Shown: positions 3,771-30,300 of the stretch, piece after piece
Position numbering within the stretch: position 1 is the first letter of the stretch
Layout of the letters: each line of letters begins with the position of its first letter
NCBI GenBank assembly: GCA_001642005.1
Contig: LWCA01000123.1
Location: 1 to 49,888, forward strand
DNA from: Intoshia linei
Lineage: Eukaryota > Animalia > Orthonectida
Reading direction: 5' to 3'
Length of the DNA stretch: 49,888 nucleotides
The notes under the pieces: model-generated
What the model was told of the DNA's origin: nothing
Database searches by the model: none
The model's input: only the letters and a program-made list of their open reading frames with translations
Translations under genes and position numbers: made by a program

Positions 3771-3842
3771 AAATTTTTATGAAAAATGGAAAAAGCTTTA
3801 AAGTGATCATTTTTAAATTCTAGGAATATTCGGGTTTTTTTA

Positions 3843-5260: not shown

Positions 5261-5280
5261 TCATTCCAAATTCGTAAATA

Positions 5281-5540
5281 TTACACTATGGATTTTTCGC
5301 AAATTTGAATTAGACCATTTTTACATGTGCAACCACCACATTGCTTTTTAAATTCGGTTGTAGGTCTACTAATGTGATCTTCCAAGGAGGCGTCATCTGA
5401 CCATAGACCATTAATTGTATCAACTAAATTAAACGGTAAAGTAGTTGAATCTATTTTATCTTGTACCAGAGGTATAAGGTACGTAATCTGCAATATTTGA
5501 CAATTGGTCGTTCCAATAGTTGTGGGCTTTCCATGAGTTT
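5281..5540 (-). CDS. Cys-rich exon, possibly the N-terminal part of the LRR gene
   Basis: Open frame ending TEFKKQCGGCTCKNGLIQICEKSI (CxxCxC-x2-G-x4-C, VWC- or LRRNT-like). Same strand as, and upstream of, the LRR exons. Splicing link not established. Confidence 0.4.
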
Positions 5541-5927
5541 ATATTACTCAAATATAAAAATAATAGTACTATTTTTATCATTAGCAGATTATAAATATTT
5601 ATATTACCAATATAATTATTTATTAGACAGATATTATTTATATATCATTTTCTTAGATATGTCACGTAATATTTGTAAACAATGTAAGCTCATATATTAT
5701 GATATCATATCTATATATTTTATTATATATTTATCACGTTTAGTGATAGCGATTCTCAACATTTTAACACATGGTTAACAGTTTAAACTTTACATTAAAG
5801 TAGTATTCCTTACTAACTTAATAAATACTTATTACTTTGGTTTTTAAAAAATCCAATTATGCAAATATACTGCCTGGTTTTGAATATATTATACAAAATT
5901 AGTCTGAATTTGTATTTGGTCTAACTC

Positions 5928-6449
5928 AGTGTTTGTCAACCGTGGGTCAGGCCCACTGGTTGCGCATGACGAAATTTTTGGTGGGGCCTGGTAAATATTA
6001 CCAGTTTATAAAATTATGAAAACTTTAGATTCATTTATTATTAGATTTTTTTGTAGAAAATATTTCATTCAATAATTATAGTCATTTATTTTGGTTATTA
6101 TTTTTAAATGATATTAATACAAGTTTCGAAGATATCAAAGTTATGGAGTTCCATTGTGGTTGATAGAACTTTTTCTGGTGGAAATGTCAATTTCAAATAC
6201 CAGATAGAACTAATAACACTAAAAAGTCTATACATTATTCACATGTTTTACTAACTGTATTTGGCGAGTATAAGAATAATAATGCGGAGTTAGTAAAGTT
6301 TTAGACTTAAAAAACTGTTTGTACTAACAAAAAATAGATATAACATCCATATTTCAAAACAAGGAGATATAAGTTTAAAGCTTACAACATTAGTGTTTAT
6401 TATTCAGAAAATCTATAAGAATATTCAGGCTCATCTCATTATTTATTAG
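5928..6449 (+). mobile_element. hAT (Buster/Charlie-type) element remnant with degenerate transposase C-terminus
   Basis: Left TIR-like CAGTGTTTGTCAACC at 5928. Frameshifted fragments FEDIKVME/PLWLIELF and LTKNRYNIHISKQGDISLKLT...IQAH match the Buster-type C-terminus (TKxRNRLxI...GDLRL...QAHxSH). Confidence 0.65.
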
Positions 6450-7337
6450 AAAATTGGCCGTTTGGGCGAATTATTTTTTAATATCTCATTTTACTAACAT
6501 TTCATCAATTCCCCGAAAGGGGGCAAAAATAAAATTACAAATGGAGATCAGTATCGGAATTTATGTTGTTAAAAACAATTATAGCATTTCTTTATTTTAG
6601 ATCTACTTCATATGAAGTAGATAATACACATTGTGTTAATTGAGTAAATTTTCCCAGGTGACATACAGGAAAAAATTCAATTTCCGAAATTAACGACTTC
6701 TCGGTCAATCTAGTATTCTACAGGTAAAGATGATGATATGATAAGACATATTGGACAGCGGTGTCCTGAATGGAAATATTATAGTTTATTAAATTTATAC
6801 AAGGGAAAATTATGTTCCTCTTTTCATTGATTCGGAATGACCAGTTGAATGTAAACCAGCAGTAATATTAAATGAAGAATTGAGACATCTATTGACCTTC
6901 ATTAAACTTTTTGTCTCATTCCATGGATTGACTTTGACTGCTAAATTAGCAATTATTTCATTTTACAGACTTTACTTGACACGAAATATAAGTCTATAAA
7001 ATCTAATGCATTTGTTTCTGCGTGTTCCCGTTTAATTAACAAATTAACAGTCCTAAAATTTATAAAAATCCAATTTCCAGTACATTTTTTCGAGAGCGAT
7101 GTTTTATCGCAAATTTTATTTTCAAAAATTGAGTCCTAGAATTTTACAAAACATCAATTCTGGGACGCGTTTTAAAATCATTAATATTGTCGTAAATCTC
7201 AATCCGTGAAACTTACATATTTATAGTCAAAACCGATATTACCCTTTTTTATAAATAAAAAAATAATCGAATTTGATAAAACTATGACGCATACGCAAAT
7301 AACAAAATAGTAAAAATTTTGACGTCCATTCATAGAG

Positions 7338-8360
7338 CAGTGATTCTAAACCTTTATTACTACATTACTAATATTACCGTACTTATTTCGAAATTACCCA
7401 CAATATTTTTTTAACTGCATATTTGATGGTCAGGTTTTTAGAATAAGAGTTATATCATTCTTATAATAATTTAATTAAAATTTTAAAAAAACTAAATTTA
7501 CAAAATAGTAAAATAATTCCTAATTTTTTTTGGAAATTGTAGGAAGAATATTTAAATTTTCATTTTTAAAAAACGGGAGTAAATTTTGTTTTTTCCGGTA
7601 AAGATGCAAATTTCTTCGAGGGAAATATATCTTACTCGCTGTACCAGAAATAAACTTAATTAGAATTTGTGTTTTTAACTTTCTGAGACTGTCGCGACAT
7701 GTCGGCTTAAGATATAATAAAAAATATTGTTTAATTGTTTTCACATATAATAAAATGTTACTTTTTTGAATATAATAAAATAGTTTATGAATAAAAAAAA
7801 ATAAATACTAAAATGCTTTTTTGACCGTGAAGGCTTCACTTTGTCAGACTGAAATTTTTTGTGTGTGTTAACTGAATACGCTGTATCAACTGTAGTATTT
7901 TTTAAAATTCTTGGACTATTTTAATTTTTTAAAAAAAGGGTAATCTGGAGTTTTTATTTGAAAATACACTTTTTGAAGGTTGCCATTCATGATAATGCCT
8001 ATAATTTTAATAACTATCCCAGAATGTATGTTATTTTTAATTTTTAAGTTAATTTTATTTTAAAAAAATGGCAAATTGGGTTTTTGCCGCTGTAAAATTC
8101 AATTTAGGGAAATATAACTTAGATCTAAACATCATATGCGAAAAAATGTATTAGAAATTGGTTTTATTAAATTACGACTTTTAGTTTTTTAAATAGACTG
8201 TAACACAAACAAACATTCAGTTTTATACATATTTTGAAGTGTGCATTAGACGCAAAAAAAAATAAAAAAAATCTTAATTTTTATACAAATTTCACCATTA
8301 CCCATGAAAAGTATCAAATTACCCACTCATCGGTAAATACCCACAGATTGGGAATTACTG
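7338..8360. mobile_element. hAT-type MITE with a nested Helitron-like repeat (about 7790-8230)
   Basis: Ends CAGTGATTCTAAACC and GATTGGGAATTACTG. Flanks tcaTAgag / cacTAgag form a degenerate NNNTANNN TSD. Confidence 0.6.
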
Positions 8361-8841
8361 CACTAGAGCGAAATTCACTTAAGCTTTGTATTTTAAAGAT
8401 TTAGAAAAAAATGTTAAACAAAAAAAAGTGTTCCTTTAAAGACTCTACCAAATCTTGGTGCCAAAATTATCTTAAAAATCTTTCATAAATTGGGTGAAAA
8501 AATTTCCCTTAAATCACCCTACCAAAATTTTGATCCCAAAATCAATAATATTATTAATTAGAAAAATCTAGTATTATGCCGCTCAATTGAATGTTTTTCA
8601 AACATTTTATATTCGTTCGGGTTTTTACTCAAAATCTTTAATATAGTGTAAGATTTTGGAACTAAAAGCTGCAAATTTAAGAAAAAAAGTTATTTCAGTA
8701 AAACAAATCTGATTTATTATAAAATTTAACTAATCCTTTGTAAAATGGTATATAACTTGTTTGAAATTTTTAACGGCACATATAAAATATTCTGGCGCAC
8801 CGATTCAGAATAATTGATAGGTGTTGACTAGTATTCAATGA

Positions 8842-9654
8842 CTAGAATGTTGATTTACCTGAAAAAGGTTGTTTAAAAATTCTTTTAATAATGCAACCAT
8901 GTTTATCCTTATAATTGAGTCGTTTGGAATATTTATTATCTGAAACACCAATCTCAGACCGACATTGAATTCCAATATTTTGCATAAGTTCTTCTATCGT
9001 AGATTCATCCAAGTACATTTTATCTTTATAATATTGTTGATACCTTTTAAAATCAATATTGGTGGAGTTGCGATTACTTGGTACACCTTTAGATTTCTGC
9101 CAGATGGGAAATTGCGAATATAATTTCTGGTGGTGCACATATCTGACTTGTTTAGGATCTGAAAATGAATATTTTGGAGAAAAGTCATAATTTTCTTTAA
9201 AACTGACTTTTTTGACTGTAATCACACTTTCAGGGTCTTTATGTTTTGTGTCTATTGTATTTTTGTTTTTGGGTGGCTTGTAAAAATTTTCACTTAAATA
9301 CGACTCTGCGCGTTGGACGTATCGTTGTTTTTTATTGAAATATAGATTTTGGGAGATTTTTTTAATTTTTGTATCAGTTAAAGTCACACAACCTCTGTCA
9401 TCCATACAAGCCACTAAAGGTTTTTCCGTTTGATCCACACTTTCGTTTTTATTTTCAGCTTCATTCTCATTAAAAGTGGTAATTTTAGGTAATGTCAAAT
9501 TTTGTGGAGATATGGCATATAATTCAAATTTAGGTTTGATATATTGCTTGGTTTTGTTTTTCATAAGATTTATGTCTCTTTTTTTAAATATTCTAGATAT
9601 ATTGTTAATGTTCAAATCCACCAAATAATCTCGAGTTTGTGAGTGTATATTCAT
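8842..9654 (-). CDS. Hypothetical 270-aa K/N/S-rich protein, single exon
   Basis: 813-bp uninterrupted ATG-to-stop ORF, unlikely by chance in such AT-rich DNA. An in-frame TGA lies just upstream. No recognisable domain. Confidence 0.7.
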   Translation of the reverse strand: MNIHSQTRDYLVDLNINNISRIFKKRDINLMKNKTKQYIKPKFELYAISPQNLTLPKITTFNENEAENKNESVDQTEKPLVACMDDRGCVTLTDTKIKKISQNLYFNKKQRYVQRAESYLSENFYKPPKNKNTIDTKHKDPESVITVKKVSFKENYDFSPKYSFSDPKQVRYVHHQKLYSQFPIWQKSKGVPSNRNSTNIDFKRYQQYYKDKMYLDESTIEELMQNIGIQCRSEIGVSDNKYSKRLNYKDKHGCIIKRIFKQPFSGKSTF

Positions 9655-10397
9655 TTTTTTTCAAAGTTTCATATTTTAATGGCAGTGCAATGCATTGTCT
9701 GGAATAATTATATTGTTAATTATGTACTCTAATTATATATTTTTTATTGGTGACATACATATTTCATTAAATCAGAATCTTTATAAGTAAACTTTTTTCT
9801 TTTCTTTGCTTGTTAAATAATATTTTTAATTAAAATGTTCTAATTTTTCAACACACCAATGTCATTTTATTTTGTTTGGATACTAAAGAAATTTTCAACT
9901 ACAATACACAATTATCTACTACCTATGAGCATTTATTTATAGACCTTCAATTGTAATTACCAAGTTTTCTCAAAAATGGTTAAACAAGACTTTTCATAAT
10001 TTCTCGTTTTAGTTACGCGTGTGTTGTGTTGCTGTACATAAATGATTTATGTAAAATTAACATTATCAATATCAAATTATTGTATTCAATTTCAAACTAA
10101 TTTAATTTAATTAATTAATTTAAAATTCTTCGATAAATATTAGTATAATAAACCGTAAAATAAATTAAATATAACTAAAAAAAAATAAAATTATGAAAAT
10201 AAAATAAAAATTAAAACAATTAAAAATCGTAAAAATTTACTTGGAAATATTTAAAGTTTAAACTTTTTTACAATATATAAAAATATTAGTAATACACAAA
10301 AGATTAGTGTACTGTAAAAGAATTTTAGATAAAATAATATGCAAATTGTACAATGTACATTTGTTTTTCTTGGTGATTATATAATATTAAACTTGGT

Positions 10398-13300
10398 ATG
10401 TCTGAACAAAGTATTTTATTGATAAAATATGCGGAAATGGGCGATTCCGCCCCCATGCAAAAATTGATTAATGAATCATTCCAATTGATTGATTTCTATT
10501 TTACCGACATTATGAACCGCAATGCAATGGATCTAGCTATAGAAAATGAACATTTGGGAGTTATTATACTTTAATGTAGACTAATAAACAATATATAGGT
10601 TATAGAAGTATTAATGAATTACATCCATTCAGACCAAATATACGCTAGTCTAATGCTTTCGATCAATTTAGACTTGGAAGATTTAGCAGTAGTCATTTTA
10701 AGGTATATTACTTAAAATTATATATTAAAACAATGGGTACTTAAATGTAACGACTATAAAGGTATGCTCGTCCAAAGACACTAACAAATTTTAACATTAA
10801 TAAAATCTATTAAACTTTCATTTCCGGTAGAATAATATTTTTCAGTACACCCAAATTTCTGAAATTTCTAAAAACTAATTGTAACACCATTCTCCACAGT
10901 ACAAACTAATGTTAGCAGTAAATTCACATAATTATTTATCATTTAGCCACCCAAGATGTGATTATGAGGAACAACATTATAGTCTCATCTCCAATATATC
11001 ATCCGAATTTACCCCTTTAACTTTGGCAGCATACAAAAACCAATATAGAATTGTAAAAATAATGCTGTCACGTGGTATGATGATTTATGAACCACATATT
11101 GTTGACTGCAGGTGTGGAGATTGTCTAAAAAACGAACAGTTTGATGGGTTACTGTTTGCTCGATACCGTCTGAATACCTACCGTGGTTTATCATCTCAAG
11201 CCTATATTTGCTTGTTCAGCAACGATCCTATATTGACATCGTTTTTACTAGCCAATCTATTCAAAAAACTGTCCAATATAGAAAAACATTATAACGTAAA
11301 TTTTATTATGACATTTATTTATATTAATACTGTATATATTTCATGTTTGTTTTTCAATTCATATAAGAAACTGATTGTTTGTTCATGTTTAAAGACCGTA
11401 GAGATGATTATGGCATATGACGGATCTATGATTCTAAATTTCATATTTTATTTGAATCTCACGGATCTCAGGTATATAGTTTCGGACACCTATGGGGTCC
11501 AGGGACCCCAACCCGGTAACCACTGATGTATGATGAAGTGTATTTATTTTTTATGCAATTCATAATCACCATATTATTGAACTGTCGATGTAAGAAGTTT
11601 GAAACTAATTTATAAAATTTTTTAAAATAAAAAATAAAAAAAAACTTTTTTATAAAATAAACTCAAATATCTTTGCGGTTCACGGGTTAAGAATCACTGG
11701 AATAAAGGAATTACTCATTTTTTAATTAGTACATAAGTTCCTGCCACATTCATATTTCATCCTCATTTTCACCGATTTTTGCCTCTACACGGCCGTGTCT
11801 TCAATGTATTTTTATTATTTTTACTAAAACTCTCATAATTCATACTTCATACCCAATCTCCAATTTCAGTTATTGGTGTAGATCAGTACTTCTCAAAGGG
11901 TCCACAGTAGGGATTGTGATTTCCCAGGAATAATAAAAAATTTTTATTCATATATAATATAGAAGCATTAAAAATTTTAGAAACAAAAAAAAATTTAATT
12001 AATGAAATAACACGAATGTAGATTGAAATTTACAAATTTAATTAGAAAAAAATTTATTTATTTAGATTGTTGAAAAAGTGTTTTAAAACACACATAATAT
12101 TGATAGATTGGTCTTTTAAAAGCATTTTACGTTTTGTAACGAAATTAGAAGCAGTAGAGAAATTTCTTTCATTTTATTTTGACATAGGTTGAACGGTCAT
12201 AAGGCTTCCCTTAATTTTAACAATCTTGATAATAGCGTTCCAATTCGTAACAACTCATAATATTTTTCAAAATAATATTGGAAAAAGAGGATAATTCCCT
12301 TAAGCGTTAGTAATTTGTGGTTTGAATAAGAGGTTTTTAAAAAAGTATTAGATATTTTTCCATTAAGAACTGGAAAATTAGATTTTTTATTTGTGGTTTG
12401 ATGAAGTAGATTTTTGTCATAAAATTTCGTAAAATCGGATTTTTGAAAAGAATATCGGTGTAAGTCAATTTTTCCATAAGGGCTTAGAATGGTATTGTTG
12501 ATTAAATTTTATTAGTGGTGGAATTTTTGAAATGGTAAATTTTAAATACATTCTAATATAATATAATCATATTTTCATAGTAATAACAAATATAAATCAA
12601 ATACAGGTATGTCTCAATTTTTTTCAATTTTCGGGAAATCCCGGGAAATTATTAAATATCCCAGAAATTTTGTCCCGGTTTTTTTCCCGGCACAATCACT
12701 AGTTCATAGTAGTTCACACTATATAACATGAGTTTCCGCTATAGTAATGTATTATTTCAGGAATTAAAACATCACTAAATCCAACTCCAAAAGAGAAAAT
12801 TCAAATTTACCAACACTTGAGGGAAAAATCCCATTTACCAACCCTTAATGAAAAAATCTACTTAATCCAACCAAAAAGAAAAAAATCCACTTTTTTAAAT
12901 TTTTCTTCGAAAATTGCGATTTTATCAAACCATCCGAGAAAACACCTCTTATCTTTCGCGTATTCAGACATTTTTTGATTAAAATTATTTTTTATGATGC
13001 CACAATTTCCACGTTGACCTGAAAAACTGTATAAGAAAATTCATGTTTGTAAAAAGTTTGTTTGTTTAAGTAATTAACGTCAATTTAAAGTTCCAAACTG
13101 CATATGCAGTTCATGAATGTAAGAGTGTTAATTCAAATAATAAAAATTAAATCGTTTATTTCAATAATTAAGGGTCTTAGAGTTTTTAAAATTCCACTCT
13201 TCTATTACAGTTTTTTTCGATGCTGAAATTAAGATCAATTATAATCTCAGAAACTTATATCTCATCCGTCAAAAGTCCCACTTATCCTTTTTTTAAAAAT

Positions 13301-16300
13301 CAAACGAGTCCTATAGTTTAAAAAATATAGACTCTGATACTGACTTTAAAATTATGATAATTGTCTTTAATTTTTTTAAAACATTTAATTTTCAAAAATT
13401 TATGTCTTCAAAACCAAAACCTCAAATTACCCTTTTTACAAAAAATAAAAATAGTCCCAGAAATTTAAAAAAAAATACAGTTCATATATAAAGTAAAGAT
13501 TAGTGTAATTATAATTGATAATTTTAAATACGGTACCAGAATTTATGTTTTTTAAATTGTAAAAATTTTTTTAAGTCACGAAAAAAGATATCATTTTAAT
13601 GTACAAATTTAAAGGAATTAGGATGGTATAGAAAGTGTGTATATATATTTGAAAATATTTATTGTATTTATTCAATTTTTTAGAGTGAATACATAGAAAT
13701 GGAACAAAAATTACATATATTTAGTAAAACATTATTGGATTATATTCATTTAACTGAAGAAGTTGAGGTAGTATTGAATGATATAGGCGATATAAACAAA
13801 CCACCTCCTAAAAAAAATACAAATTTAAATAGATTAAGAATAGCTCTAAATTACAACGAAAAACATGTAATTTTTAAAAAATATTTTTGATACTAAAAAA
13901 CAGGTGTTTCAAAAATTAATATAGCAATATTCTATAATTATTGCAATTTTAGATAATTACAATATAAGATATCAAAATTTAGTTTGTAGCTCATTCAATC
14001 TGTCAGAAAAAGATTACCACTCTATGGTACGGGGAAGCATCTTTTCTGAGAAACAGAAGTCTAAAAAACATACTCCTATTTACTCTGTTTTTTATTTTCG
14101 TATATCCAGTATCATTTGTCATTCAATTAATTGCTCCAAAATCCACCGTAATTTGACAGTAATCCATTCACTTTTATTTTTATATTTTAGGTTGGTTCGT
14201 GGTGCAGAATACCTTTTGTTAAATTTATTACTCATTGTTTATTTTTTGCAATTTTTCTAATTTTTATATTAATTAATGCAATGAACAATAGTGATCAAGT
14301 TAACGAACAAATGACATTTCAATTTTATAATATCACTTTTGAATATTTTGATACATCAATTTCTATCAGTTCATTCCGACAATTTAAATCAAATACTTTT
14401 GAATATTTTGTTTTTTTATTCATAATTGGTAATATTTTAAAAGTAATTGTATAATTATTATAATGATGATTATGTAGGTATATTTTTTCAAGAAATTATT
14501 CAGTTGTATCACGTCGGGTTTGCTGATTATGCTGTATCTCCCTTTAATATTATTGATAGTTTCAGTTTGATGCTGTATTTTATCACATTTGCCTTAAGAT
14601 ATGTTTCCTTTTATTATGTAATTTTATTTTTTATTGTAAAATAATTTTTTTCAATTTAGACAATGAAAGGGTTTGTATATTTCAAAAGTAATTTGAATAA
14701 TTTGGTTTTATTACATAATTTCGACAATGACGCTATAACTCATTATTATTGGATTAATGGAGGTTGATATACATTTTTTACAATTCAATATATTTATAGA
14801 TCGAAAGAGGTGGTTTTACAGTGATCCATATATTGTAAGCGAAACTACATATGCTATTGCTAATTTTCTCAGTTTTACCAAACTATCCAGTTATTTAGCC
14901 GCCGATGAACATTTGGGTCCACTACAATTGGCTTTGATGAGAATGATCAATGTAATAATCCATACTAATCAATAATCTTAAATTTAGGATTTTTTAAAAT
15001 TCTTGGCAGTTCTACTTATTATTATGTTTGGCTTTGTGGTAATACATTATGTATTCATATTAATATTCTTACTCGCGTAAAATCAAATGGCTATATCAGC
15101 GGTAGGGCTCGCAAAAAACCGAAAATTTTAAAACCGATTTTATTCGACTATCATTTATATAAAACCGATTTCAAGCCCTAATCAGCGGTTACAAAAATAC
15201 TTGCAGTGCCTTTGTTACTAGAATAATTGTAAATGTAGTTATTGTTATCTACATTACTCTGAAGGACTCAATTTCGGAAAATAGCATTTACGATACTGTG
15301 TCACTCTCGAAAACGGTATTATTAGTGGGATTTTTTATAATTTAGGAATTAATTTTTTAAATTAACGATAACACACTAATACATACAATTTTATCCAAAC
15401 AAACGATTGAGTTAATGTAAAAAGTGTATGTCTATGTGTCTACGTGTCTGTGTGTCTGTTGTCATTTAATTAATAAAAGTCGTAAAATTTTAAAAATACC
15501 AATTTCTAATACAGTTATTCGAGGATAAGATTTTATCGCACATTTTATTGTTGAAATTGGTCCTTCAGAGTCAAAAACACAAAGTATCTTTTTTAAAATC
15601 AAACTAGTCATAGAATTAAAAATAATATTCAATCTGGTACAGATTTTAAAACTAAATTTAGATTGCTTTACGTAATCTTTACTGGTACTATCATAAAGAC
15701 ATAATAGACAGTGCTTTTGGAACGTTATTATTTCAATAAAATGATTCAAATACATTTTAGATATGAAAGTTCGTTTAAAACAATATTTTGGTCTTTATTT
15801 GGCATGTCAGATCTGATTTCAATGGAAATATCGAAAGACTATGATGCTGGAATATTAACGAACCGTGCTGGCTTAATAATGTTTGGGTTATACAATTTTA
15901 TTGCAGTTATCATTCTATGTAATTGAATGATTTCATAAAATATTATATTAAATTTTCATTAAAATACAAATCTATTTAGTAAACATGCTTATTGCAATGA
16001 TGACAAAGTCATATGAAAATATTAAAGTAATTATACAAATGATACAAGATTAAATTGTAACTTTTCTGATATAGAACGATTCAGATACTGAATGGAAATA
16101 TGCTCGAACAAAGTTGTATTTAGAATACACCAAGGGTGGGGTCGGAATGCCAATAATTTTAAATTTGATTCCAAACGTTTCATATTTTTTCAGAAAAGTT
16201 TTCAAAGTGGAATTATGGAAATATGTCACAGTAATCTTTAAAATTTCATTGTTAACTGTAATATTTTTAGAAAAAATGTAGTTGTTTGAGAAGAAAAGAT

Positions 16301-19131
16301 AAAAAATCCATTACCCCTCTACACAATGACAAGAAAAGTTCCATCAATGCCGGGAGAACGTATTTTGTAAGATTTTAAATTATGCATATTTTTATAATTT
16401 ATATCTTCAATTCATATCAATATGTTATATGTTTGTTTTAACCTATAAAAACAAAAAAATTCACGTAGTGTTGTTTTTTTTTGTTAAATTTTCTTCTGAA
16501 CAGTAATGAAATCTCTTATTAGGCATAATAATAATAGTTCTGGGGTCTTGTCAGTTGTACCAACGTTATATAAATTTTAAAACATAATTGTATTGCCATT
16601 ATAAGATAGTTCTGTTGTAGAACAAGCAGCGTGGTTCTATGTCCGTATATATCTAATTCAGGGTTTCTTAACCTTTTTTAAATTTAGTACCCCGTTAGTC
16701 AACTATTTCTAGTACATCTATAAAAAATAAAAAAGTGGTCCACTAGGTGCAAAAGATTTCCGATCCCTAGTTTAAGTCTTAATAAAGATGTATAAAAAAG
16801 TGTATTATTTGTTATATAAAATCAAATATTTTTTAATATTATCTTTTAAATAGTTTCTTTGTTTTGTTAGTAGGTGGTTTAATAAGCTGAAGCTCCTTTC
16901 GACTGCAATTGAGGTTGACGGGGCATTCCGTAAATAGCTGTATAAAATTGGAGGTTTCGATTGATCAACGTTAATCATAATATTTGTAATGTCGTTCTTT
17001 TTCAATCTGTTTATAACATAGTCATTGATATTGGCTGGGTCTGGGAAGAAATTGATATCATTCATGAGCTTGAATGATTTTTCAATACTAAAGTTGTTTT
17101 CTTCGGTCCTATCAATAATATCAATTAAAGATTGATAGCCACTTAATTCAATTAATTCATGATGCAAATTTGAATTTGACAATGCTTTCTTTGCTCTTTG
17201 CATAATAACCCCCTCACCATCGATACCATCAATTATATCTTTAAAATTTTTTAAATTATGCATATAATAGACACTAGCTTTAAGCTAGCTACCCCATCTA
17301 GTTATAATGGGTCGAGGTGGATATCCAATATTATGGAATAACCCTCGAATATCTTTATTTTTTAAAGTAAGAAATTTGAATCCTCGTGATTAATTCATCA
17401 ACAAGTACGTATTTTTATTACGTGCTATAAAAACTATTACATAAATTAAAATATTTTTTTTATAACATCTTTTTGTTGCTTTTATATATTCGATAAACAT
17501 ATTTGTTAACTGCAATAATGTATAATTTAAATATTATACTTTAATAAAGCTTATATGTTCATTTCTATCATTTATTGATTATGTTCGATATTTATAGGGT
17601 GGTTTTTAAAAATATCAAAATACTATTTTTACTTTGAATTTTAAGGCATCATTTTTTTATTTTTTAGAGGGGTGCTAAATTTAAAAAAGGTTAAGAAATC
17701 TGATCTAGAGAAAAGCACTAATTAAATTATATAAATATTTATTTAAAAGCAATTTTTAACTTCTCACTAGAAAACGAAAAAAAATTATATTTAAATTACC
17801 GTGCAGCATCAATTAAGAATAAGCAAAATTGTTCACGAGTTAGATCCAAATTTTTAATTATATCATCAAAAGTATGAATGACCATTTGTCCGTTCATACT
17901 ACTTGTAATATTTTTACAATCATATAATATTACATTCTGAGATTTTTCTAATGTTCCGATCATAGTATTAATGGTAACTAGTATTAAAATAATTTAACTT
18001 TTAAAAATAAAATTTAACTTTTGAAAATATTTTTTAATTTTATTAACTTTATTAACTTAACTTTAATTAGCCAATTAATACACCCAAAATTATTATCATT
18101 ATGATTGTAATTTAATGCTTATGAACATATCAAAATTTTCCCTAGTTAAAAAATAATCGCCCTAGTTATAACTCAGCGTTTCCTAAATGCCAGTTTGCGA
18201 ACCAGTACTGATTCGTGAAAAAATTTCACTAATTAGAAGTCAATTAATGCGTTTTTTATTTATTTTTTTTAAAGGTTGCCTAGTAATTGTCATTTAATGC
18301 CCTCACGTGAAAAAAGTGATGGAACCCCTATTATGACTGATATGTGTAATATATTTTTTACTTACATAACATTGAATGTCTATGTGTCTGTTTGTCCGTG
18401 TGTTTATATTTTTAAATAAAAGAGTACATTGGATTTTTCACCCTGATATTAACTCAAATTCATCAACTGAAAAATAAACATCAACATTCCCCGCGAAAAA
18501 CTTAAAAGTAGATATTTGGTTTTTTAAATTCTATAACAGTTGCCGTCAATTTTTTAAATATACGGTAACAGACACACATACGTTCAATTTTATATAAGTA
18601 AAGGATTAGTTATTTTTCTTTTAAAAATACACATTTTCTAACTGACAGCTTTATCAAAAGCTTATTTATTTTATTTTACATATGTGACAACATAAAATAT
18701 GTGAATAATTATTAATATTTAGACAATAGTTAAGAATTTGGTTCAATGTTACATTAATGATCACAAACATGTTAGCTCGCGACATCAGAGTATATTTATT
18801 TTATTATTATTCAATAATTTATAAAGATGACATCAAGGAAATGAAACAGGACATGACTGGCATACGATACGACATATCAAACGACGTCAAAAGATACAAC
18901 GAGAATTTGAAAAGTAAATTAATGGATTCAAATGTCACCCTTGTTGACAAAATAACTAATGTACATGAAAACCTGATTAAATATATGAAGCAAAATGAAC
19001 AATTTCAATCAAATTATGAAAATTACGTAATCAATTATGATGAACATCAAGTTTTTTTGGATAATCAGGATGATGATGACTATACACAAAATATCAAACA
19101 ATTAACAAAAATGTTAATAAATATTAAATAA
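10398..19131 (+). CDS. TRPC: Canonical TRP (TRPC-family) cation channel, multi-exon
   Basis: Ankyrin exon (YAEMGD...DIMNRNAMDLAIENEH), TRP_2 domain (TPLTLAA...PHIVDCRCGDC...RYRLNTYRGLSS...DPILTSF), FVAHSICQ, HLGPLQLALMRM, DFLKFL, LRNLYWYY, pore TIFWSLFG, S6 LLNMLIAMM, TRP box EWKYAR, and C-terminal DDIKEMKQD. Stop at 19129-19131. Confidence 0.93.
11908..12701. mobile_element. hAT-type MITE nested inside another MITE within a TRPC intron
   Basis: TIRs TAGGGATTGTG / CACAATCACTA. Flanks gtccacag / gttcatag match 6/8. The host element begins CAGTACTTCTCAAA at about 11884. Confidence 0.65.
15103..15180. mobile_element. 78-bp hAT (Ac/Ds-like) mini-MITE
   Basis: TIRs TAGGGCTCG / CAAGCCCTA. Perfect 8-bp TSD ATCAGCGG (15095-15102 and 15181-15188). 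Three internal AAACCGA motifs. Confidence 0.85.
16659..17702 (-). mobile_element. hAT-type element with about 35-bp TIRs carrying a degenerate transposase fragment
   Basis: CAGGGTTTCTTAACCTTTTTTAAATTTAGTACCCC versus GGGGTGCTAAATTTAAAAAAGGTTAAGAAATCTG. ORF 16805-17263 contains APSTSIAVERSFS (hAT dimerisation motif). Upstream PPRPIITRWGS* is interrupted by a stop. Confidence 0.8.
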
Positions 19132-19439: not shown

Positions 19440-20310
19440 AGCTTATAGTGTAAGCTGTAATTTTTTTAAAAATATTGGACTATTTTCATGTTTAAAAAAC
19501 AATAATCTGGGTTTTGATCGTAAAAATGCACTTTTTTAATGTTTCGATTTTAAAAAATATATCAGCATGTATGTTCTATAAAATAACGGGAGATTCTTAA
19601 AACAAAACGTAATTTGTGGTTTTGACCAAGATGTGCGTTTCTGATGCTGATATTTGCGACAATCCTAATGAATATAAAACGCGTGCCAGAATTTATTTTT
19701 AAAAAAGGGTAAATTGGGTTTATGACCATAAATCTCCATTTCTGAAATGACATTTACAATAAAATATCATTCTCGAAAAACGGTATTATAAATGTTGTTT
19801 TTTAACTTGATATAACTGTATAATCTGTAATTTTTTTTAAAATCTAGGGTTGTTTTCATTTTTATAAAAAAGGTAATCATGGTTTATGATAGTAAAAATT
19901 ACCTATTTTTAGGTTACCATTTATGATAATGATTATGAATTTAAAAACCATCCCAGATCCTATGTTATATAAAATTCCAGGACTTTCTTAATTTTTCAAA
20001 AAAGGGTAATTTGTGGTTATGACAGTGAAGATATAAAATTTTGAAATTGAAAATTATGTTAATATTGATGAATTTAAAACGTTTTATTAGAATGTGTATT
20101 TTTTATAATACTGGGACGGTTTTGAAGTTAAAAACAAAGCCAATTAGAATTTTTAACCTTTTAGGACTCAATTTCTAAAATTGAAATTTGCGCTAAAACA
20201 CCACTCTGGAAAAACTGTTATAAGAATATGGACTTTGTAAAACTCGACTGCCCTTACTTTCTTAAATAAGCTGGAACAAATATATAAATAAACAAATAAA
20301 CAGACATACA
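19440..20310 (-). repeat. Helitron-like repeat with several internal diverged tandem units of about 110-120 bp
   Basis: Repeated AAAAGGGTAATTTGTGGTTTTGACC...TTTAAAA..TCCCAGAAT units. Homologous blocks at about 2680-3005, 7790-8230, 25230-25795, 39400-39700, 41130-41885 and 48870-49220; inverse copies at about 7000-7260, 13150-13500 and 47100-47762. Confidence 0.7.
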
Positions 20311-20779
20311 TTTTTAACCATTTTACTTCATATAATTAAGGCCAACAATAAATAGATTACAGCAGCTTAAACATCATCAATAATTTTTTGAATTAAAAAA
20401 CAAAATTTTTAGAATTTTACATGTATTTATAAACCAAATTATCAACCAAATGAACTTTATTCAACGAAATTCAAAGATATTAAAAAAACACTTACCAATA
20501 AAGAAATGTATCCTTGTTCGAGGAATTTCTAGTTTTATTAATTTTGAAAAGATTGATAAATCAGATATATCCCATTTAAAAGACAGATTTCTCGTTAAAA
20601 ATATATTTCCCAGTGATAGGTAATTTATTACGATAATTAATAAATAAATATGCATACAATTATAAGTCAGTGATTGTCATTTTTGTTCATTTACATTAAT
20701 AAACAAAATGATGTTGGTAGTAAAATTGTTTTTTTATCACTTCTTTCATTTCACAACCGGGTCCGGTTGCGAATGACTA

Positions 20780-23272
20780 ATGCAATTAAACACGTTATGG
20801 CGAGAACAAAACAAGTATTTAATTTATTTCATTAATTCATTGAATTTAAATTAGAGTTGACCAACTTAATAATCTTTTACGTGAAAGACAGACTGTTTAC
20901 CTAGGAATAGACGCCACATCAAATTCATTACACTTGGGTCATTTGATTCCTCTCTTAACATGTTTCCATCTCAATATGATGGGACATGGAGTTATTATTT
21001 TGATTGGTAATTTTTATTAATAAAAATAAGAATAAATTTCCCAATGTTTTTATATACAAATGGATTTATATTAGCCATATAACGCCGAACCTACAATACC
21101 AGAGTGACCTCTTTTGACGAAAAATTTCTGAAGTGGCGCCTAACTTTTGCAAATTGAGCATTTAATATGATTTTATTTTTGAATATCATTAATATTTTGT
21201 GTATCAAATTTAACATGAAAGTTTAGACCAGTGGAGGGGCTAGAGTAATATGCATGGTGTGTGAAAAAAATGCATATTTTTATAGACCTATTTTTGATTT
21301 TCTGTCTCTAATTTGGTAGGGTGGGCTCGGTAATTGATCTAAGCCTAGTGCTCTATGATAATTTTTCATAGCAAGAATTGCAAACTTTTAAATTAACTTA
21401 TAGGTGATTGTACGGCTTGTATTGGAGATCCTAGTGGTCATACGAAAGATAGAAATGTAGATGATAAAATTAAATATAATGCCAAATGTTTGTCTGATTC
21501 AGTCAATTCTATCTATAATAATATAAACCGGGATATAGAATTAACGTCAGATTTTAGGTTATTATAAATTGCAATACTTATAATTATTTTAAACATTTTA
21601 AATTTAGAATTTTATTCAATTCAGAGTGGTACAATGATATTAATTGCATAGATTTCGTTTCCAATGCTTGTAAAAATATTAGAACAAAAACATTACTTAC
21701 TCGTGAGAGGTTTTTATTAAATTAAAGATTTATTAAAGATTAATCCTTTTTTTGATAAAGTTTTTTAAGGGTTGCAAAAAAATAATAAAATGTCCTTTTT
21801 GTGGGTTACAAAAAGATTAAACCTTTATTAAAATACTTTTACCTTGATATTACTAAATAGCGTTAAACAGCGAATGAAAAGTCAACATGGTCTTTCACTG
21901 TCTGAATTTATTTATCCCGTGTTCCAAGCTTATGATTGGTATCACATGTTAAGAAAATATCAAGTGAAAATTCAAATTGGTGGAGACGACCAACATGGGA
22001 ATATACTGACTGGGTTTGAATATATTAGAAGAAATTTGTCTGAATTTGTATTTGGTCTAACTACTCCACTTTTGACGGATTCCACCGGCGCAAAAATTGG
22101 AAAATCAAGTGAAAACGCTTCTCTAGTCAATTTGTCACCTGATAAAACACTTCCGTACACCTTTTATCAAGTATTTTTAACTTTGTGTTAATTTTAAAAA
22201 TAAATTTTAGAATTTTTACAATACACCAGATTTCATGTTAGACGTGTATTTACGTCAATTTACCTTTTTATCTGAAAATTTTATTGAAAATTTGTTACAA
22301 AATCATAAAGTATGTATGTAATTGTAATCAGTGTTCTCTTTAAGTATCCATATTGGGAATTTTATAATTCTGGCTAAACGTAGAAGCAACACATTACTAA
22401 TAATTTTTAGTAATAAATTATTCATGCCTTGGTCCCCCTATTGAATAAACGTATCTATAAAAATTTATCGAGACTTAAAGAAAATACTGTATAGATTATA
22501 TACTATAGAACATATTTAACAATGAACAATTTAGAAACAACCCCATCTACGTTTGGGTCAAAAAACTCTTGCAAATTCACTATTAAAATTAGTTCATGGA
22601 GGTTTTAATGCTAAAGATAATGATTAATATATGCAGAGCCGAACCTACCCAACTTGAGACTGAAACTGAAAAATAGGTCCCTAAAAAATTCGCACACGAA
22701 AAAGTGTCATATAGCCTTATCCACTTTTCTAAGGCTCTCGGATTGACATTTCAAATTTACCACACATAATTAATATTGACGAGTACATTTTTTAATGCTC
22801 AATTTGGAAAAATGCGGCTCCGAAGAGGTGTCTCTGGGTAGGGTAGGTGGCACTGAATTTTATTTATTTATTTTATTTAATTTAGAAAAAATTTTAAAAG
22901 ACGTAATAGAATTGACAGAATTGATAAACTCGAAAGATGTTCAATTATTATCAAATATTTATAAAAATGACTTAATTCGACTTTTTAAATATTTATACAT
23001 TGAGCTTGAATTTTTTCCAATAAATTTACAAAAATTACTCGAAACTTGTAAACTTTTTGAAAAAAACGGTAAAATATGCATAATGTATTCTTATTTCATT
23101 TATGAAAAATGTAGATATTTCTAAAATTAAAAGTGGTACAATATACGTCAATTTTAAACAGATTAAGGATCAAAATTATAATGTCACTATGAATGATGTT
23201 TTGACCAACGGATCTACTCTGATTAAATATGGAAAGTCAAAATATATATTAATTGTTTGGATTAAACATTAA
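20780..23272 (+). CDS. YARS2: Tyrosyl-tRNA synthetase, mitochondrial/bacterial type; start codon uncertain
   Basis: TVYLGIDATSNSLHLGHL (HIGH motif), IGDPSG, NSEWY, LSEFIYPVFQAYDW, QIGGDDQHGNI, KIGKS (KMSKS motif), and an S4-like C-terminus GTIYVN...LIKYGKSKYILIVW. Stop at 23270-23272. Confidence 0.93.
22634..22855. mobile_element. MITE in a YARS2 intron; its right end recurs at about 23450-23517
   Basis: Left end CAGAGCCGAACCTACCC, right end GGGTAGGGTAGGTGGCACTG. About 66 bp are near-identical to 23450-23517, with a related piece at about 21080-21165. TSD weak. Confidence 0.55.
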
Positions 23273-23633
23273 TATAAACTTTATATAATAAAGTATTCTT
23301 TAACCCTGTAGGTCCTACAATATGAAAATATAATTCATATGGGTTGGGTTACCTATATCTGTGTCTAGCCAATTTTTGGACAATATAAAATAATCTGTTG
23401 AAAGATTTGACGTAATATATAATTGTTACATGTAGACATGATGTAGTTAATTTTTAATGCTCAATTTGGAAAAATGCAACTCCGAAAAGGTGTCTCTGGG
23501 TAGGGTAGGTGGCACTGACATTTATTTCAAATTAATTTAAAGAAACATTACATTTTATTTACAAGTTCATTATGATTTGTAACCATGTTAAGATTTTGAT
23601 TTTTGAGTAATTTACATAGAAGCTAAACGATAA

Positions 23634-24094
23634 ATGTCGAGTAATTAAAAACAATAATACAGTACTATAAAATTAGTTTAAATTACGATAGCCAACTTTT
23701 TGAATAAACATTGTTTAATCAAAACTTTAGGAGGAAATAGACGTGAAACTGACAGAAAACGAGCTGAAAAACGACACGAAGGCAACAAAAAAAAAACGGA
23801 GACATTGTCGCATGCCAAAAGAAAAGAATTGTAAGTTATAATATTATTATGAGAGTACAACATTTTTGTAACACTATCCAACTTGTACTAAACCATTTTA
23901 TGTAAAATTTAAATATAAAGATTTTCGTCATAAACTCAGTTCACAGAAAACTAATGACTCATGGCAGACCAAATGACTTTAAAAATATAAATTAAATTAG
24001 GGACGCTGCAATTATGAGAAAGAAAGTAGAAGAACATAAATTAAAAGATGCAGAAAATGAAAAAATGCAACAATGTAAAAGTGATACAAAATAA
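23634..24094 (+). CDS. SERF: Small EDRK-rich factor (4F5/MOAG-4 family), 66 aa, 3 exons
   Basis: Exons 23634-23640 (ATGTCGA), 23731-23830 and 24001-24094 splice in frame to MSRGNRRETDRKRAEKRHEGNKKKTETLSHAKRKELDAAIMRKKVEEHKLKDAENEKMQQCKSDTK*. This matches the MxRGNQRE...RK.RDA.IMR.K consensus, and the 7-nt first coding exon is typical of SERF genes. Confidence 0.88.
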
Positions 24095-24138
24095 TTTATT
24101 TGTTCATATACATATTTTTACTATTAAACATTGTACCT

Positions 24139-26457
24139 TTAATCATTGTATCGAGCCTAAAAGGTGATTAAAATATTTTTACAATCAGATTCATATATTC
24201 CAAGCAGGCCCGTGGAGAGAGCCTACAATCATGAGTTGCCTATTTTTTTAATTTATTAATAGGTAATATTGGAAAATTTCCATAACCAATGTGATTTCCA
24301 ACGATTATTTTTAATTTTTAGAAATAAAAGATCGATTAAGCCAAATGTTGGTCCATGAAAAATTTTTATTAATTAACAATTTAAATGTAAGTCAATTTAT
24401 TACGATTTTTATTAAATTTTTTTTAAAGTTGCCCTGTAATTTTGCTTTAATCGTTCACGATAAATATTAAAATTAATTAGCAGTGCGTCGTGAAAAAAGT
24501 TTGGGAACCCTTAGATTAAGCAATGTATAGATATCCCATTTGTTATAGAGCTTATTAGTGACTGTCCACGGCCCTGTTTTCAAGTAATATTAGACTCAAC
24601 GATTTTTCAGTTATTCACCGTGATTATTACAATACATATGAACTATTTATAAAATCTACCTTCCAATAACCAGTTTTGTATCCACATAAATACCACGACA
24701 TAAGCATGCTTTTAAGGCCAGCTTTATCACAACAATTTTTGGGGATATCCAAAAAATCAATTGGAGGCATAGCCATATCTTTCTAAAGTTTAACTTTATG
24801 TAAAATTCATTGATAAAAACAAAAAATATAATATAAATTGATAAATCTACTATAAATTCTGAGTTTTTTTGGGTATTTTTCTATAATTAAAATTATTAAT
24901 GAATAATATTAAAAGTAGATAAAAACTTTTAAAGACACTAAATAACGTATGTAATCAATGACGAGTAAATTTATAATTCACTAGATGGACTGTTATACAC
25001 TTCGTACAAACAGGACCTAGCTCTGCCGAGGGCGAAGTTTTTTAATTCTTCCCAAAAACTACATTCAATAATAAAATCTTACTTAATGATGCTACTATTC
25101 ACTATTATCAATGCCTTAAAGGGGTGGTTCCCAAAGTTTTTTCACCACAAGCCGGTCATGTCACATCTTTTAATTTAAAGTGAATTAATCCACTACATTT
25201 TGTTTTATTTTTTTAATAAAATACAGTGTCGTTTCGAAAAAAAATGAAATCTAAAGTGCTTTTTTGACCATTAAGGCGTAACTTTGTCAGATTGATAATT
25301 ATTGAGTGAATTAACTTTCCAGTTATAATTTTTTTAAATTCTAGGACTATTTTCATTTTTTAAAAAAAGTAATCTGGTTTTAAACATGAAAATGCACTTT
25401 TTTGAGGTTACCATTTATGATAGTGATTATAATTTAACAAACTATACCATAATTTGTTTTATAAACTTTTAGAGCTTTTTTCATTATAAAAAGGGTACTT
25501 TGAGGGTTTAATTAAGAAAATGTACGTTTCTGACGCTGAGATTTACGACAATGTGATAATAATTTTAAAACACGTTCCAGAATTTATGTTTAATTCAATT
25601 TTTGGTTGATTTATTTTTAAAAAAAGGCAAATTGAGTTTTTGACCCTGAAGGACTCAAATTCTGAAACTGAAAAATAGATAATCATAATATAATCATCCC
25701 CAGAAAATACTGTATTAGAAATTGCGTTTTTTAAATTTTACGGTTGTTAATATTTTAAACATACGATAACACAGACATTCAATTTTGTACAAGGATACTT
25801 GTCATTTTTGCACAGTAAATTTAATCACTGATTTTTAACAAAAATATTTAGATTTATAAATATTTTTATTTTGTTACTAAGAACAAATCTTTGGGTGAGG
25901 TTTTTAGTTGGTTAATCAATGATTATACAAATGAATGTAAATTAACCTCTTTTTTGTTGTTTTCCTTTTCCTGATAAGTTTAAATTACACAATTAATTTA
26001 TTGTTAATAAATAAAAATCTTTACAATTACTTTTAAATTTGTAGGAATGATGGGTAGTAATTCAGTCATTTTTTTCTTTTCGCAATTTAAATAATATTCA
26101 TACTCTACGACACAGGTATCTTCATCGATAATAGACAAAATGGTACAATTATATCTCATACCATCCTCTTCATAAATTGCAGAAAATTTGTCGCCTATTG
26201 AGTGTTTCTAAATTAATTTTAATGCCAATTTCTTTATGCAAACATCTTAATTTAAAAAACACTGATGCACAATTTACATAATGTAATTCGCTTGCTTTTT
26301 TAGTAAAATGTAAACATAATTTAATTATAAATAACCAGTTTAGCAGAGCAGTTATCCATACTATCATTGAATTTATTTACAAGTTCGTCTTCACTGCTCT
26401 AAATTTATCTTTTATTTAAAGTTTTTTTAAATAATATACCTCGTTTATAGAATTCAT
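24139..26457 (-). CDS. SMN: Survival motor neuron protein, about 150 aa, 7 exons
   Basis: Phase-0 exons 26457-26440, 26398-26336, 26207-26031 (Tudor: IGDKFSAIYEEDGMRYNCTILSIIDEDTCVVEYEYYLNCE), 25970-25947, 24880-24851, 24782-24660 (YG box: LKSMLMSWYLCGYKTGYWK) and 24156-24139 (ARYND*). Micro-exons and the last exon are less certain. Confidence 0.92.
24205..24576. mobile_element. hAT-type MITE in the last SMN intron
   Basis: TIRs CAGGCCCGTGGAGAG / CTGTCCACGGCCCTG. Flanks attccaag / ttttcaag match 6/8. Confidence 0.75.
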
Positions 26458-27352
26458 TTTAAAATTTAAAATTTTAAATTTAAATTAAATTAACGATAAT
26501 AAATTTAGCTAACAAAAGTAAATACAGATAAAAAATATATACATGTAATTGATAAATTATCAGTACCAGACGACATTAATGATATAATGAATAGCCAAAT
26601 AAACCTTCATAGTTTCAAAATCAATCAAAAGCACTTGTCTTTTTACTATTTTCAATTTTAATCAAGAACAGTCACTAGACAATTATGATCTGGAACCTAA
26701 GAGCATTTCATCTTTTTTTATACCCTCCGATTATAACAAATATTGGAACAAGCGATATAAATAATTAAAGGCTAAACTAAACTAATTGTGATAATCACAA
26801 ATAATTTCGGAGACAACGAAATCTCTTAAAGTCAAAGCGAACATTTATCTAAATTTGCATTTGCAATTGTAGAGGCAATTTGTGCGTGATAGCACAATGT
26901 AGTAGCTAGCTAAGCACATGATAAATAACAATATAAAGCTTCTATAGTATACAATATTATAATGTATGATAATAGATCATACAATTTACAAGACTTTCGA
27001 TTACTTTCAGTCATGTTCCAGAAAATTCATGTAAATGAAAAATAAGAAATTGAATATGAAACAATAAAGTCTATCAACAAAAATGGTCCTATCACTAGAA
27101 ACTAAAACCAGTTTAATGCTGACCATTACGTTTCATATCCCTCAATTGTTAATGTATGGAAATTTTTTTATAACGTTTCATAATTTGTAGACAGAAGAAT
27201 GATACTTTTGTATTTTGATCAACTTTATTTGTTGAAATTAGGTAACTCTGTGATACATTCAGTTTATTTCATAACACATTGCTATAGATTTTAGTTTTAT
27301 TTGATTGAGTTTATATTTACGATTTATCGTTCTATTCTTTTACAAAATAAAA

Positions 27353-30300
27353 ATGGTCAACTTAACCGTACGTACTTTGAATGGACAAATACGACAATTT
27401 TGTATAAACGAAGATGTAAATTGAAATAATATGAGTCTAACCAAATTTTAGATTCAAATAAGTCGTTTTAAACAAATGATTGAAAATCAAATTGTAATTT
27501 TATTTTTAATTCATATTTACTGTGTAATGTAGAATATACCTTCTGACCAACAACGACTTTTGTATCAATGTACTACAATCGCAGACGATGAGTCTATATC
27601 TAATTATGATGGTAAAACTTTATACGTTGTCAGCAGACAACCTCCTGCGCGTACAGTGAATCGCAATGAAAATGAAGATATACATGTGTCTGTCAACGGA
27701 AATTCCAATGTTATATATCGATCTATGCCCATAACGAATCAACCAAATGCTCCAAGAATTGAACAAGTTATATCCAATTCTTTGAGACCGGGAATGACAG
27801 CATCCCGCATACATCTTGAATCTGCAGTAAAAAGTTTTTATATTTATATTTATACGATAATTAGAACGATCGCAACGTGCATGCATATGTGGTAATGAGT
27901 AGTCCACTTTCCATGAGTAGTCCAGTTCCCACCAGTTCTGAAACCACTCCAGCTACCAATACAACGGGTCAGACCCAGACTCAACGTCAACCTACAAATA
28001 ACTCTCAACCAACTAGAGTACCTCCACCCACAGCTATAACATCAGCAATACCACAAAATGTTATGTTTCCATTTGTGCAGAGAATAGATCGCCATGCTGA
28101 TATGAATCGATTTTTATCTAATAATACACTTGAACAAGCTTTAGCTGCTTTAGAGGTAATTATATTTTTTATTATAAACTCATTTACGTTAATTTATTAG
28201 CATCAATCTGCAGTTCAAGCAACAGGAATTAATTTGACGTGATTTTTAATTTTAATAGTATATCAGTAGCATAATAATGCATCATATCAATTTGTTTTGG
28301 GTCGATGACGATGGAAGATTAACTATATTCATTTCTTGTCGGTTGACTAACAATTCGTTATATTCTTTTTACTATATAGTGTTAAAATGGTTAAAATAGA
28401 TTGTCAAAACTTTGAATTTTGACTAATTTATGAAATTTTTAAAGCAGTTGTGTATAATCTTTTTTTTGGAAAGTGAAACCGTTGAGAAAAGTTGTTTTAT
28501 AATTTTGAATAAACACTTGATATGTTATACCGTGTAGATGATCTAGGGGCGATATGTGCATACAATCTTGAGGGCGGCTATTTTAATTTATTAATAAATA
28601 CTGTTGCAAAAATATATATTTTTGGGAAATTTCATTATGATCGATGAGATTTCTAACTTAATTTAAATTTTTAGAGGATAAACGATTAAACTATCTCGTA
28701 AAATCGTATTTTTAAAAAAAATATTGGAAAAAGGAGATTTTCCCTTTAGGGTTTGTAAAATTAGATTTTTTATTTTGAGGTTTAAATGGATTTTCCCGTA
28801 AGGGTTGATAAAATTGAATTTTTTATTTTAAGGTTTAAATAGATTTTTCTCAAGGTTTTGTAAAATTGTGTTTTTCAAAAAAATATTGCAATAAGGTATT
28901 TTCCCTTAAGGTTTGGTAAAATTGTATTTTTTATTTTTGAGTTTAAGTTGTATTTTTTGAAAAAATATCGATAAAAGTCAATTTTTCCTTGACTGTTTAA
29001 AATGGTATATTTATTAATGGTGGGATAAAAGTAGGATTTTTCAAATGATAATAGTGGTCGTTTAGGCTTTGGGATAATTTCCCAAAATCTAGAAACTATG
29101 TAATAAATAATTAAATAAACAAAAGTTAACAAATTTTTTTATATATTTTATTTGAATCTCACGGACCCCAGACATATAGTTTTTGGACCCTAAGGGTTCA
29201 ATGGTTCTTGAAGTTCAAGAACAATCTGTAACGACTAGTATATACGTTCTATTTTAAAAAAAAATATATGGGTCTATTATTTCCTCTGATTCTGGACTAC
29301 TTCTGCCTTCAAGTATGTATGTAAGTCTGTATATGTCAATGTGGTTGGTGAAGATATTTTGAAATTTTTCCCGTTATTTTAGTATTCTACCACTAAAAAA
29401 ATGTATATTCTTGCAGTAACGCAGAAAAAGTTTATTAACCCATTATCTATGTAATATCTAAAAATATTTTGTAAAAGTTTGCTATTTTTATCTTAAAAAT
29501 GTTTTTAATTTTTATATATTAATTTGAAGTATAACCGAAAATGTATTTTTTCTTTTTAAAATAAACAATATTGATATTCTTCTGTGAAAGTTACGGGTGT
29601 CATGATATATCATATATGCTATTTTTTAATTTCACAAATCGGTAAAAATAAATAACTTAAGCTCTTAATGCCGCTACAATAAAAAATTGATTTCTGTTAA
29701 AACCATTTATAATACATTAATATAATCCAGGGTGTTCACAATAAGGTCCACTGAAGATTATTCATGATGAATTTTCGCTCGAAAAACAAGGTTAAGAGGC
29801 CAGGTTTAATGAATATATTTAATTTTATCGAGTTGATCTGATTTACGATTTTATATTATATAAGTGGCCCGGGTCCGATTAAAATGGTCACCCTATATAC
29901 AAGTTGATAAAAATGGTGCCTTGATGTATCCATTGTTTTTTTCAGCGCTTCTTTGCTGGAGTAAAAAAAATCCTACTATTTTTTTAACATCAACTATTAA
30001 TTTAGCATATTAATCTAGTCATATGATTCTGGCCTCTCTACGCGGCCCTGAACTCTACCAGATTTTTCTAATTCAAAAATTAACGCAATTGATATGTTGT
30101 TAAATGTTGCTGGCTCACAATGAGAAACCAATATTGTTGTATTTACATTTTAGACAACATATTCGACATTACAATTTATTATTACAACGATTAGAAAGAT
30201 TCGTTCGAATTTTACGATCCTTTGTAATTCATAATTATAAATATTTATTACACATTAGAGATTGTTTCATAATGATGGAAGTTATATAAAGTAGCTGTAA

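Follow-up and report, generated by a model that had tools for sequence, protein, structure and literature searches.

SERF1 (H4F5) was proposed in 1998 as a modifier of spinal muscular atrophy (SMA) only since it lies beside SMN1 and is co-deleted with it, an idea that was never settled; SMN is a ribonucleoprotein-assembly factor, and SERF is a small factor that modifies condensates of protein and RNA. H4F5/SERF1, found by human–mouse comparison and proposed as an SMA modifier, is linked to SMN in man and mouse (PMC6030859). The same two gene families that are immediate neighbours at this human and mouse SMA locus (5q13) adjoin each other in Intoshia linei, on contig LWCA01000123.1 of GenBank assembly GCA_001642005.1. 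The window analysed here is that entire contig (49,888 bases, 26% G+C), one of 3,520 contigs in the 41.6-Mb I. linei assembly. I. linei is an orthonectid, a strongly reduced spiralian parasite.

The arrangement of the two genes differs between these systems. In amniotes the pair is tandem, with SERF upstream of SMN (the human order being taken from the literature), whereas in Intoshia, the nemertean Lineus, the echinoderm Patiria and the hemichordate Saccoglossus the genes are convergent. Their neighbourhood in man and mouse is already textbook, and SMN–SERF belongs among the ancient microsyntenic pairs, in which unrelated genes are likewise adjacent across the protostome–deuterostome split (Irimia et al. 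2012, PMC3514665; Simakov et al. 2013, PMC4085046). Unlike such pairs, it does not consist of a developmental regulator with a bystander, and its genes lie tail to tail, with no shared promoter. Convergent pairs with overlapping 3' ends, which form natural antisense in their 3' untranslated regions (UTRs), are likewise tail to tail; the SMN–SERF spacers, at 150–532 nt from stop to stop in compact genomes, are very short. A literature search returned no paper combining SERF, SMN and synteny or microsynteny outside mammals; it did not cover the supplements of Irimia et al. 2012 and Simakov et al. 2013, where the pair may sit unnamed. The supplements of two other microsynteny papers, searched as text, mention neither SERF nor SMN.

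We read the window as carrying the Intoshia orthologues of SERF and SMN, tail to tail, as the remnant of an ancestral bilaterian gene block, with a probability of about 0.85. The two genes would then have been neighbours since before the protostome–deuterostome split, the human tandem would derive from an older pair lying tail to tail, and a heavily reduced, rearranged parasite genome would still hold part of the ancestral block.

SERF and SMN on the Intoshia linei contig

The SERF-like gene occupies 23634-24094 of the + strand and comprises three exons with 66 codons, the splice sites all being canonical GT/AG. SMN runs on the − strand from an ATG at 26457 to a stop at 24627. The two are immediate neighbours in convergent orientation, with the following parts:

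23634-23640, + strand: SERF exon 1, 7 coding nt (ATG and four more) with a GT donor directly after them; read directly
23731-23830, + strand: SERF exon 2, EDRK-rich N-terminal domain; PF04419 SERF-like_N match below the cut-off; phase-2 donor
24001-24094, + strand: SERF exon 3, DAAIMRKK motif and TAA stop; from the translation
24095-24626: SERF–SMN spacer, 532 bp from stop to stop, which must accommodate both 3' UTRs
24782-24627, − strand: SMN exon 4 (last), YG box and stop; PF20635 match; residues 87-137 of OAF70667.1
26030-24783, − strand: SMN intron 3, 1,248 nt; absent from OAF70667.1; contains a dispersed repeat
26207-26031, − strand: SMN exon 3, Tudor domain; PF06003 match above the cut-off
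26398-26336, − strand: SMN exon 2, placed where the Gemin2-binding region would be, though unrecognised as such; no Pfam match; in OAF70667.1
26457-26440, − strand: SMN exon 1, ATG plus 5 codons; residues 1-6 of OAF70667.1; read directly

The deposited SMN protein, OAF70667.1 (137 aa), is labelled 'hypothetical protein' and is 100% identical to the window exons. It joins four exons, in place of the seven that the initial annotation had counted for SMN. The three-exon SERF gene on the + strand and its immediate, convergent adjacency to SMN, both described there, agree with the models above: within the 532-bp spacer there is no run of N and no further coding signal. Hexamers resembling poly(A) signals abound on either strand of the spacer, so the transcript ends of the two genes cannot be placed.

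The SMN orthology proposed in the same annotation is firm on domain content. The Tudor exon matches PF06003 (SMN_Tudor) with 31.4 bits against a cut-off of 22.7, and the last exon matches PF20635 (SMN_YG-box) with 30.7 bits against 21.3; the latter is the sole YG-box match in a six-frame search of the genome. Compared with solved structures, the Tudor exon scored 36 bits with SMN Tudor domains and 21 bits with SPF30. The sole other SMN-type Tudor match in the genome is a single-exon gene of 224 aa on a different contig, which carries the NCBI name Survival motor neuron domain-containing protein 1 (SMNDC1). The C-terminal YG box is an oligomerisation motif and is missing from SMNDC1/SPF30. No Pfam match to the Gemin2-binding domain PF20636 was obtained with exon 2, which is divergent and only 21 aa long, or with OAF70667.1, and a search of the I. 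linei genome gave no exon match to Gemin2 itself (PF04938), a result that is not conclusive. With 137 aa and no proline-rich region, the I. linei protein is a minimal SMN.

SMN-like proteins 300–390 aa long, with two SMN-type Tudor domains, a Gemin2-binding domain and a YG box, were observed in several non-mammalian vertebrates (Xenopus, turtles, crocodile, caecilian, gecko, coelacanth and lungfish). They may represent a second SMN-family gene that mammals lack.

Phylogenetic spread and age of the pair

The surroundings of SMN (±10 kb) were read in 10 other animals, giving 11 named species including Intoshia. SMN orthologues were reached by a representative protein search with the Tudor exon, after which the SMN proteins of Hydractinia and Lottia served as word-search queries. 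The strand and ends of SMN were checked by tblastn, and SERF exons were sought in the DNA itself, since they are often uncalled. SERF adjoins SMN in four of these animals:

Saccoglossus (Hemichordata): Surp/G-patch(−), SMN(+), SERF(−), PC4(+); convergent, spacer 3,086 nt; SERF called, PF04419
Patiria (Echinodermata): Surp/G-patch(−), SMN(+), uncalled complete three-exon SERF(−); convergent, spacer 2,369 nt
Lineus (Nemertea): NUDIX(−), SMN(+), uncalled complete three-exon SERF(−); convergent, spacer 4,027 nt
Lagopus (bird): BDP1, SERF(+), SMN(+), GTF2H2; tandem, as described for mammals

With Intoshia, the adjacency is seen in Orthonectida, Nemertea, Echinodermata, Hemichordata and Chordata (Aves), and so in protostomes and deuterostomes alike. 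The Lagopus order is the amniote form of the SMA locus. Linkage in intervening lineages, on which the initial annotation had let shared ancestry depend, is present, convergent in the nemertean, the echinoderm and the hemichordate and tandem in the bird.

Metagenome contigs with an SMN alignment provided further cases. Nine of the 60 short contigs, from at least 7 organisms, carry SERF, and most of those without it are too short to judge. In each of these environmental pairs SERF comes shortly downstream of SMN and on the other strand, with no case of any other arrangement, and the SMN proteins of the nine contigs are 30–42% identical to named SMN. Stop-to-stop spacers measure 150–310 nt in intron-poor environmental contigs (150–175 nt in five of them). 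Convergent orientation is found in 13/13 non-vertebrate SMN–SERF cases.

Gene structure is the decisive evidence for the predicted SERF assignment. A first coding exon of 7 nt, closed by a phase-1 intron in the Arg3 codon, is common to the SERF genes of Intoshia, Lineus, Patiria, Saccoglossus and Lagopus, and in all five intron 2 is in phase 2 at the homologous place. Exon 3 begins with a D[AS]xxM[RQ]xK motif (DAAIMRKK in Intoshia), aligned with exon 3 of the other four species. The size of the I. linei gene (66 codons) fits a family whose members have ~60–70 aa and a high content of E, D, R and K. Within the reach of six-frame searches, SERF and SMN are both single-copy in the 41.6-Mb assembly.

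The gene tables of Patiria miniata and Lineus longissimus lack the complete three-exon SERF genes of these species, an annotation gap; SERF is easily missed because its first coding exon is just 7 nt. The models built in this analysis, by a DNA-level exon search, are located as follows:

Patiria miniata, 20170-23479 of the extracted region (SMN at 10001), − strand: uncalled SERF
Lineus longissimus, 16279-18272 of the extracted region, − strand: uncalled SERF

Since the convergent pair is common to two spiralian and two ambulacrarian phyla, it dates back at least to the ancestor that protostomes and deuterostomes last shared; on this reading the convergent order is ancestral, the amniote and human tandem derived. 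The initial annotation had likened the pair to the human one and suggested an ancient metazoan microsynteny. The adjacency is indeed the same as in man and recurs as a tandem in the bird, and the argument for antiquity carries to Bilateria (two spiralian phyla, two ambulacrarian phyla and the bird); however, the tandem form is the derived one on this comparison, the pair appears to be lost in two molluscs and zebrafish, and a reach to Metazoa as a whole is not supported by the two cnidarians sampled.

Several observations weigh against an inherited pair. SERF exon 2 alone, queried without the three exon-1 residues, has PF04419 as its only Pfam match, with an E of 0.003 and 18.8 bits, under the 22.3 cut-off; exon 2 of Saccoglossus, Patiria, Lineus and Lagopus all score above the cut-off (24–35 bits). 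A hidden Markov model (HMM) built from the exon-2 peptides of four other species gives the I. linei exon just 4.6 bits. In five species neither the gene tables nor a motif scan nor a small HMM showed a SERF within ±10 kb of SMN, and genes of other kinds adjoin SMN directly. In Lottia, SMN lies between G-patch and XPG; in Ostrea, between a Surp/G-patch gene, head to head with it, and a SWEET gene. The zebrafish (Danio) gene has MCCC2 and an F5/8C gene to one side of it and NOS to the other. Of the two cnidarians, Hydractinia has a PIAS-like and an EamA gene as neighbours, and Stylophora has PC4 and a peptidase C15 gene. It follows that the pair can be dispensed with, and the evidence for it does not reach back beyond Bilateria. 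Besides the orthonectid, the animals named here are a nemertean, two molluscs, an echinoderm, a hemichordate, a bird, a fish and two cnidarians. Annelids are the likely closest relatives of orthonectids, and none was among the matches listed for the Lottia SMN word search.

The weak exon-2 scores would be expected if the + strand gene were a fortuitous K/R-rich open reading frame (ORF) in AT-rich DNA and not a SERF orthologue. No PDB match was found for it, and a six-frame PF04419 search of the I. linei genome gave no match, because an intron splits the SERF domain. We nevertheless regard a fortuitous ORF as highly improbable. PF04419 is the only family that it matches; the 7-nt first exon, the phase-1 intron in codon 3 and the phase-2 second intron are exactly as in four other species; a DAxIMRxK motif opens exon 3 of a model of fitting length; the gene lies where SERF lies in Lineus, Patiria and Saccoglossus; and six-frame searches found no second SERF candidate in the genome. 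The SERF orthology claimed in the initial annotation is thus carried by intron positions, phases and the exon-3 motif, and not by the Pfam score of exon 2. A second alternative accepts both genes and holds that SERF landed beside SMN independently in the heavily rearranged Intoshia genome. Mikhailov et al., in 2016, are reported to have counted ~8,700 genes in Intoshia; with this number, chance adjacency of one named pair has P ~2/8,700, and by our estimate ~0.5–1 adjacencies shared with human are expected by chance genome-wide. The Intoshia–human coincidence alone is therefore not significant, and it gains significance from the comparison with other phyla. Intoshia has moreover lost the other ancestral neighbours, with no G-patch, Surp or PC4 match on the SMN contig, and the two sampled molluscs, likewise lophotrochozoans, are without the pair. 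Set against this, Lineus, which belongs to another lophotrochozoan phylum, and two deuterostome phyla have this very pair, likewise convergent, and chance re-creation of both adjacency and orientation has P ~6e-5 per genome. For Intoshia, inheritance accounts for the data far better, and we give independent landing very little credence. The pair is best viewed as inherited from the bilaterian ancestor and, on the species compared, lost repeatedly, at least three times, with the two molluscs and zebrafish as the named losses.

The probable ancestral block and the persistence of the pair

In Patiria, Saccoglossus and Ostrea, SMN has a head-to-head neighbour that encodes a SUGP-like splicing factor with Surp and G-patch domains. 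In Lottia a G-patch gene lies on the same side and strand relative to SMN, 8.5 kb off. A PC4 (SUB1-like) gene is a further recurrent neighbour. In coordinates of the extracted regions, with SMN at 10001 for the Surp/G-patch and G-patch genes, these are:

Patiria, 1-7824: Surp/G-patch gene upstream of SMN
Saccoglossus, 1-5677: Surp/G-patch gene upstream of SMN
Ostrea, 1-9758: Surp/G-patch gene upstream of SMN
Lottia, 1-1494: G-patch gene upstream of SMN
Saccoglossus, 24714-27535, + strand: PC4, next to SERF and SMN
Stylophora (coral), 14733-18809: PC4, directly adjoining SMN

SUGP–SMN is probably a second conserved neighbour pair that is ancestral to bilaterians. Because the Surp/G-patch gene adjoins SMN in Patiria, Saccoglossus and Ostrea (with the G-patch gene of Lottia in addition), the ancestral locus can be reconstructed as a SUGP–SMN–SERF block, and the ancestral bilaterian order was probably SUGP <- -> SMN -> <- SERF. 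Neither Intoshia nor Lineus nor the vertebrates examined have kept the SUGP–SMN adjacency; Intoshia PC4 is on a different contig. PC4 may be an older part of the same SMN block. In Ostrea, 243 bp separate the called Surp/G-patch gene from SMN, and the two possibly share a promoter.

From such a block, ambulacrarians would have retained the full SUGP–SMN–SERF order, molluscs the SUGP–SMN half, and nemerteans and orthonectids the SMN–SERF half. In amniotes SERF would still be beside SMN, and turning SMN alone would give the tandem SERF->SMN.

As the linkage is no quirk of a primate or mammalian locus, a functional or regulatory tie between the genes, raised as a possibility in the initial annotation, is a reasonable and testable hypothesis, for which zebrafish and molluscs, with the genes apart, provide natural controls. 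Promoter sharing between SERF and SMN is excluded because the genes lie tail to tail, and the orientation kept in 13 non-vertebrate cases, together with short spacers, suggests either coupling at the 3' ends or a small target for breakpoints. If the 3' ends are coupled, the convergent transcripts would end in a short common spacer (150–310 nt in the compact environmental genomes, 532 nt in Intoshia, 2.4–4 kb in large genomes). If the 3' ends overlapped or abutted, the termination or dosage of both genes would be tied, through overlap, termination or antisense effects, and any breakpoint between SERF and SMN would then be harmful.

How far such a tie explains the persistence of the pair has to be weighed against simple inertia, by which an ancestral pair stays together with no functional link because its tiny, promoter-free spacer offers almost no harmless breakpoint. 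As stochastic decay would predict, the half of the ancestral block that survives differs between lineages; the pair has apparently been lost at least three times; spacers are short; and the three other non-vertebrate keepers, Lineus, Patiria and Saccoglossus, come from lineages generally held to be slow to rearrange. Yet the pair is also retained in the fast-evolving Intoshia, in amniotes after a local inversion, and in at least 7 further organisms represented by environmental contigs, and pairs conserved over several phyla are usually taken as constrained (Irimia et al. 2012, PMC3514665). We put inertia alone at a little under even odds. Coupling through a shared 3' region is our leading specific guess, and a tentative one. 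Because the amniote pair survived the turning of one gene, convergent 3' ends are not a strict requirement everywhere. Some other shared regulatory constraint seems slightly less probable still. The most far-reaching proposal, that SERF–SMN has been a selected convergent pair since the bilaterian ancestor, with overlapping 3' ends that couple dosage and give a deep basis for SERF1 as an SMA modifier, we consider unlikely.

Other features of the pair and the contig

SMN intron 3 (1,248 nt) is unusually long against the median intron of the I. linei genome, 57 bp (PMC6543705). Within it, at 24960-25200, lies a dispersed repeat of ~230 bp, which looks like a short interspersed element (SINE) or a miniature inverted-repeat transposable element (MITE). 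A first look across the genome gave 2,246 candidate copies of this repeat, and 39/40 other scored copies are 77–84% identical. A short inverted piece of this repeat is present in the SERF–SMN spacer near 24489-24510. Additional SMN exons within 24783-26030 were considered and rejected, as OAF70667.1 skips the stretch and part of it is the dispersed repeat; a frame scan of the intron gave one in-phase 24-nt micro-exon candidate, at 25970-25947, without support.

Several environmental contigs of 1.1–1.2 kb start and finish at the outer borders of the SMN–SERF pair, and one of them retains SERF intron 1. Contigs ending at the pair borders would fit merged overlapping transcripts, but we give the observation little weight.

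An Rfam scan of the window gave no match. Upstream of SERF there is a 77-nt direct repeat (22789-22865 and 23451-23527, 94% identical), each copy of which opens a short ORF with the same reading. Elsewhere on the contig we observed the following:

10909-11526, + strand: TRP-channel exon
16805-17263, − strand: weak hAT-transposase remnant
21844-22191, + strand: class I Trp/Tyr tRNA synthetase exon, just upstream of SERF
45118-46935, − strand: intronless Hsp70 gene, 605 aa

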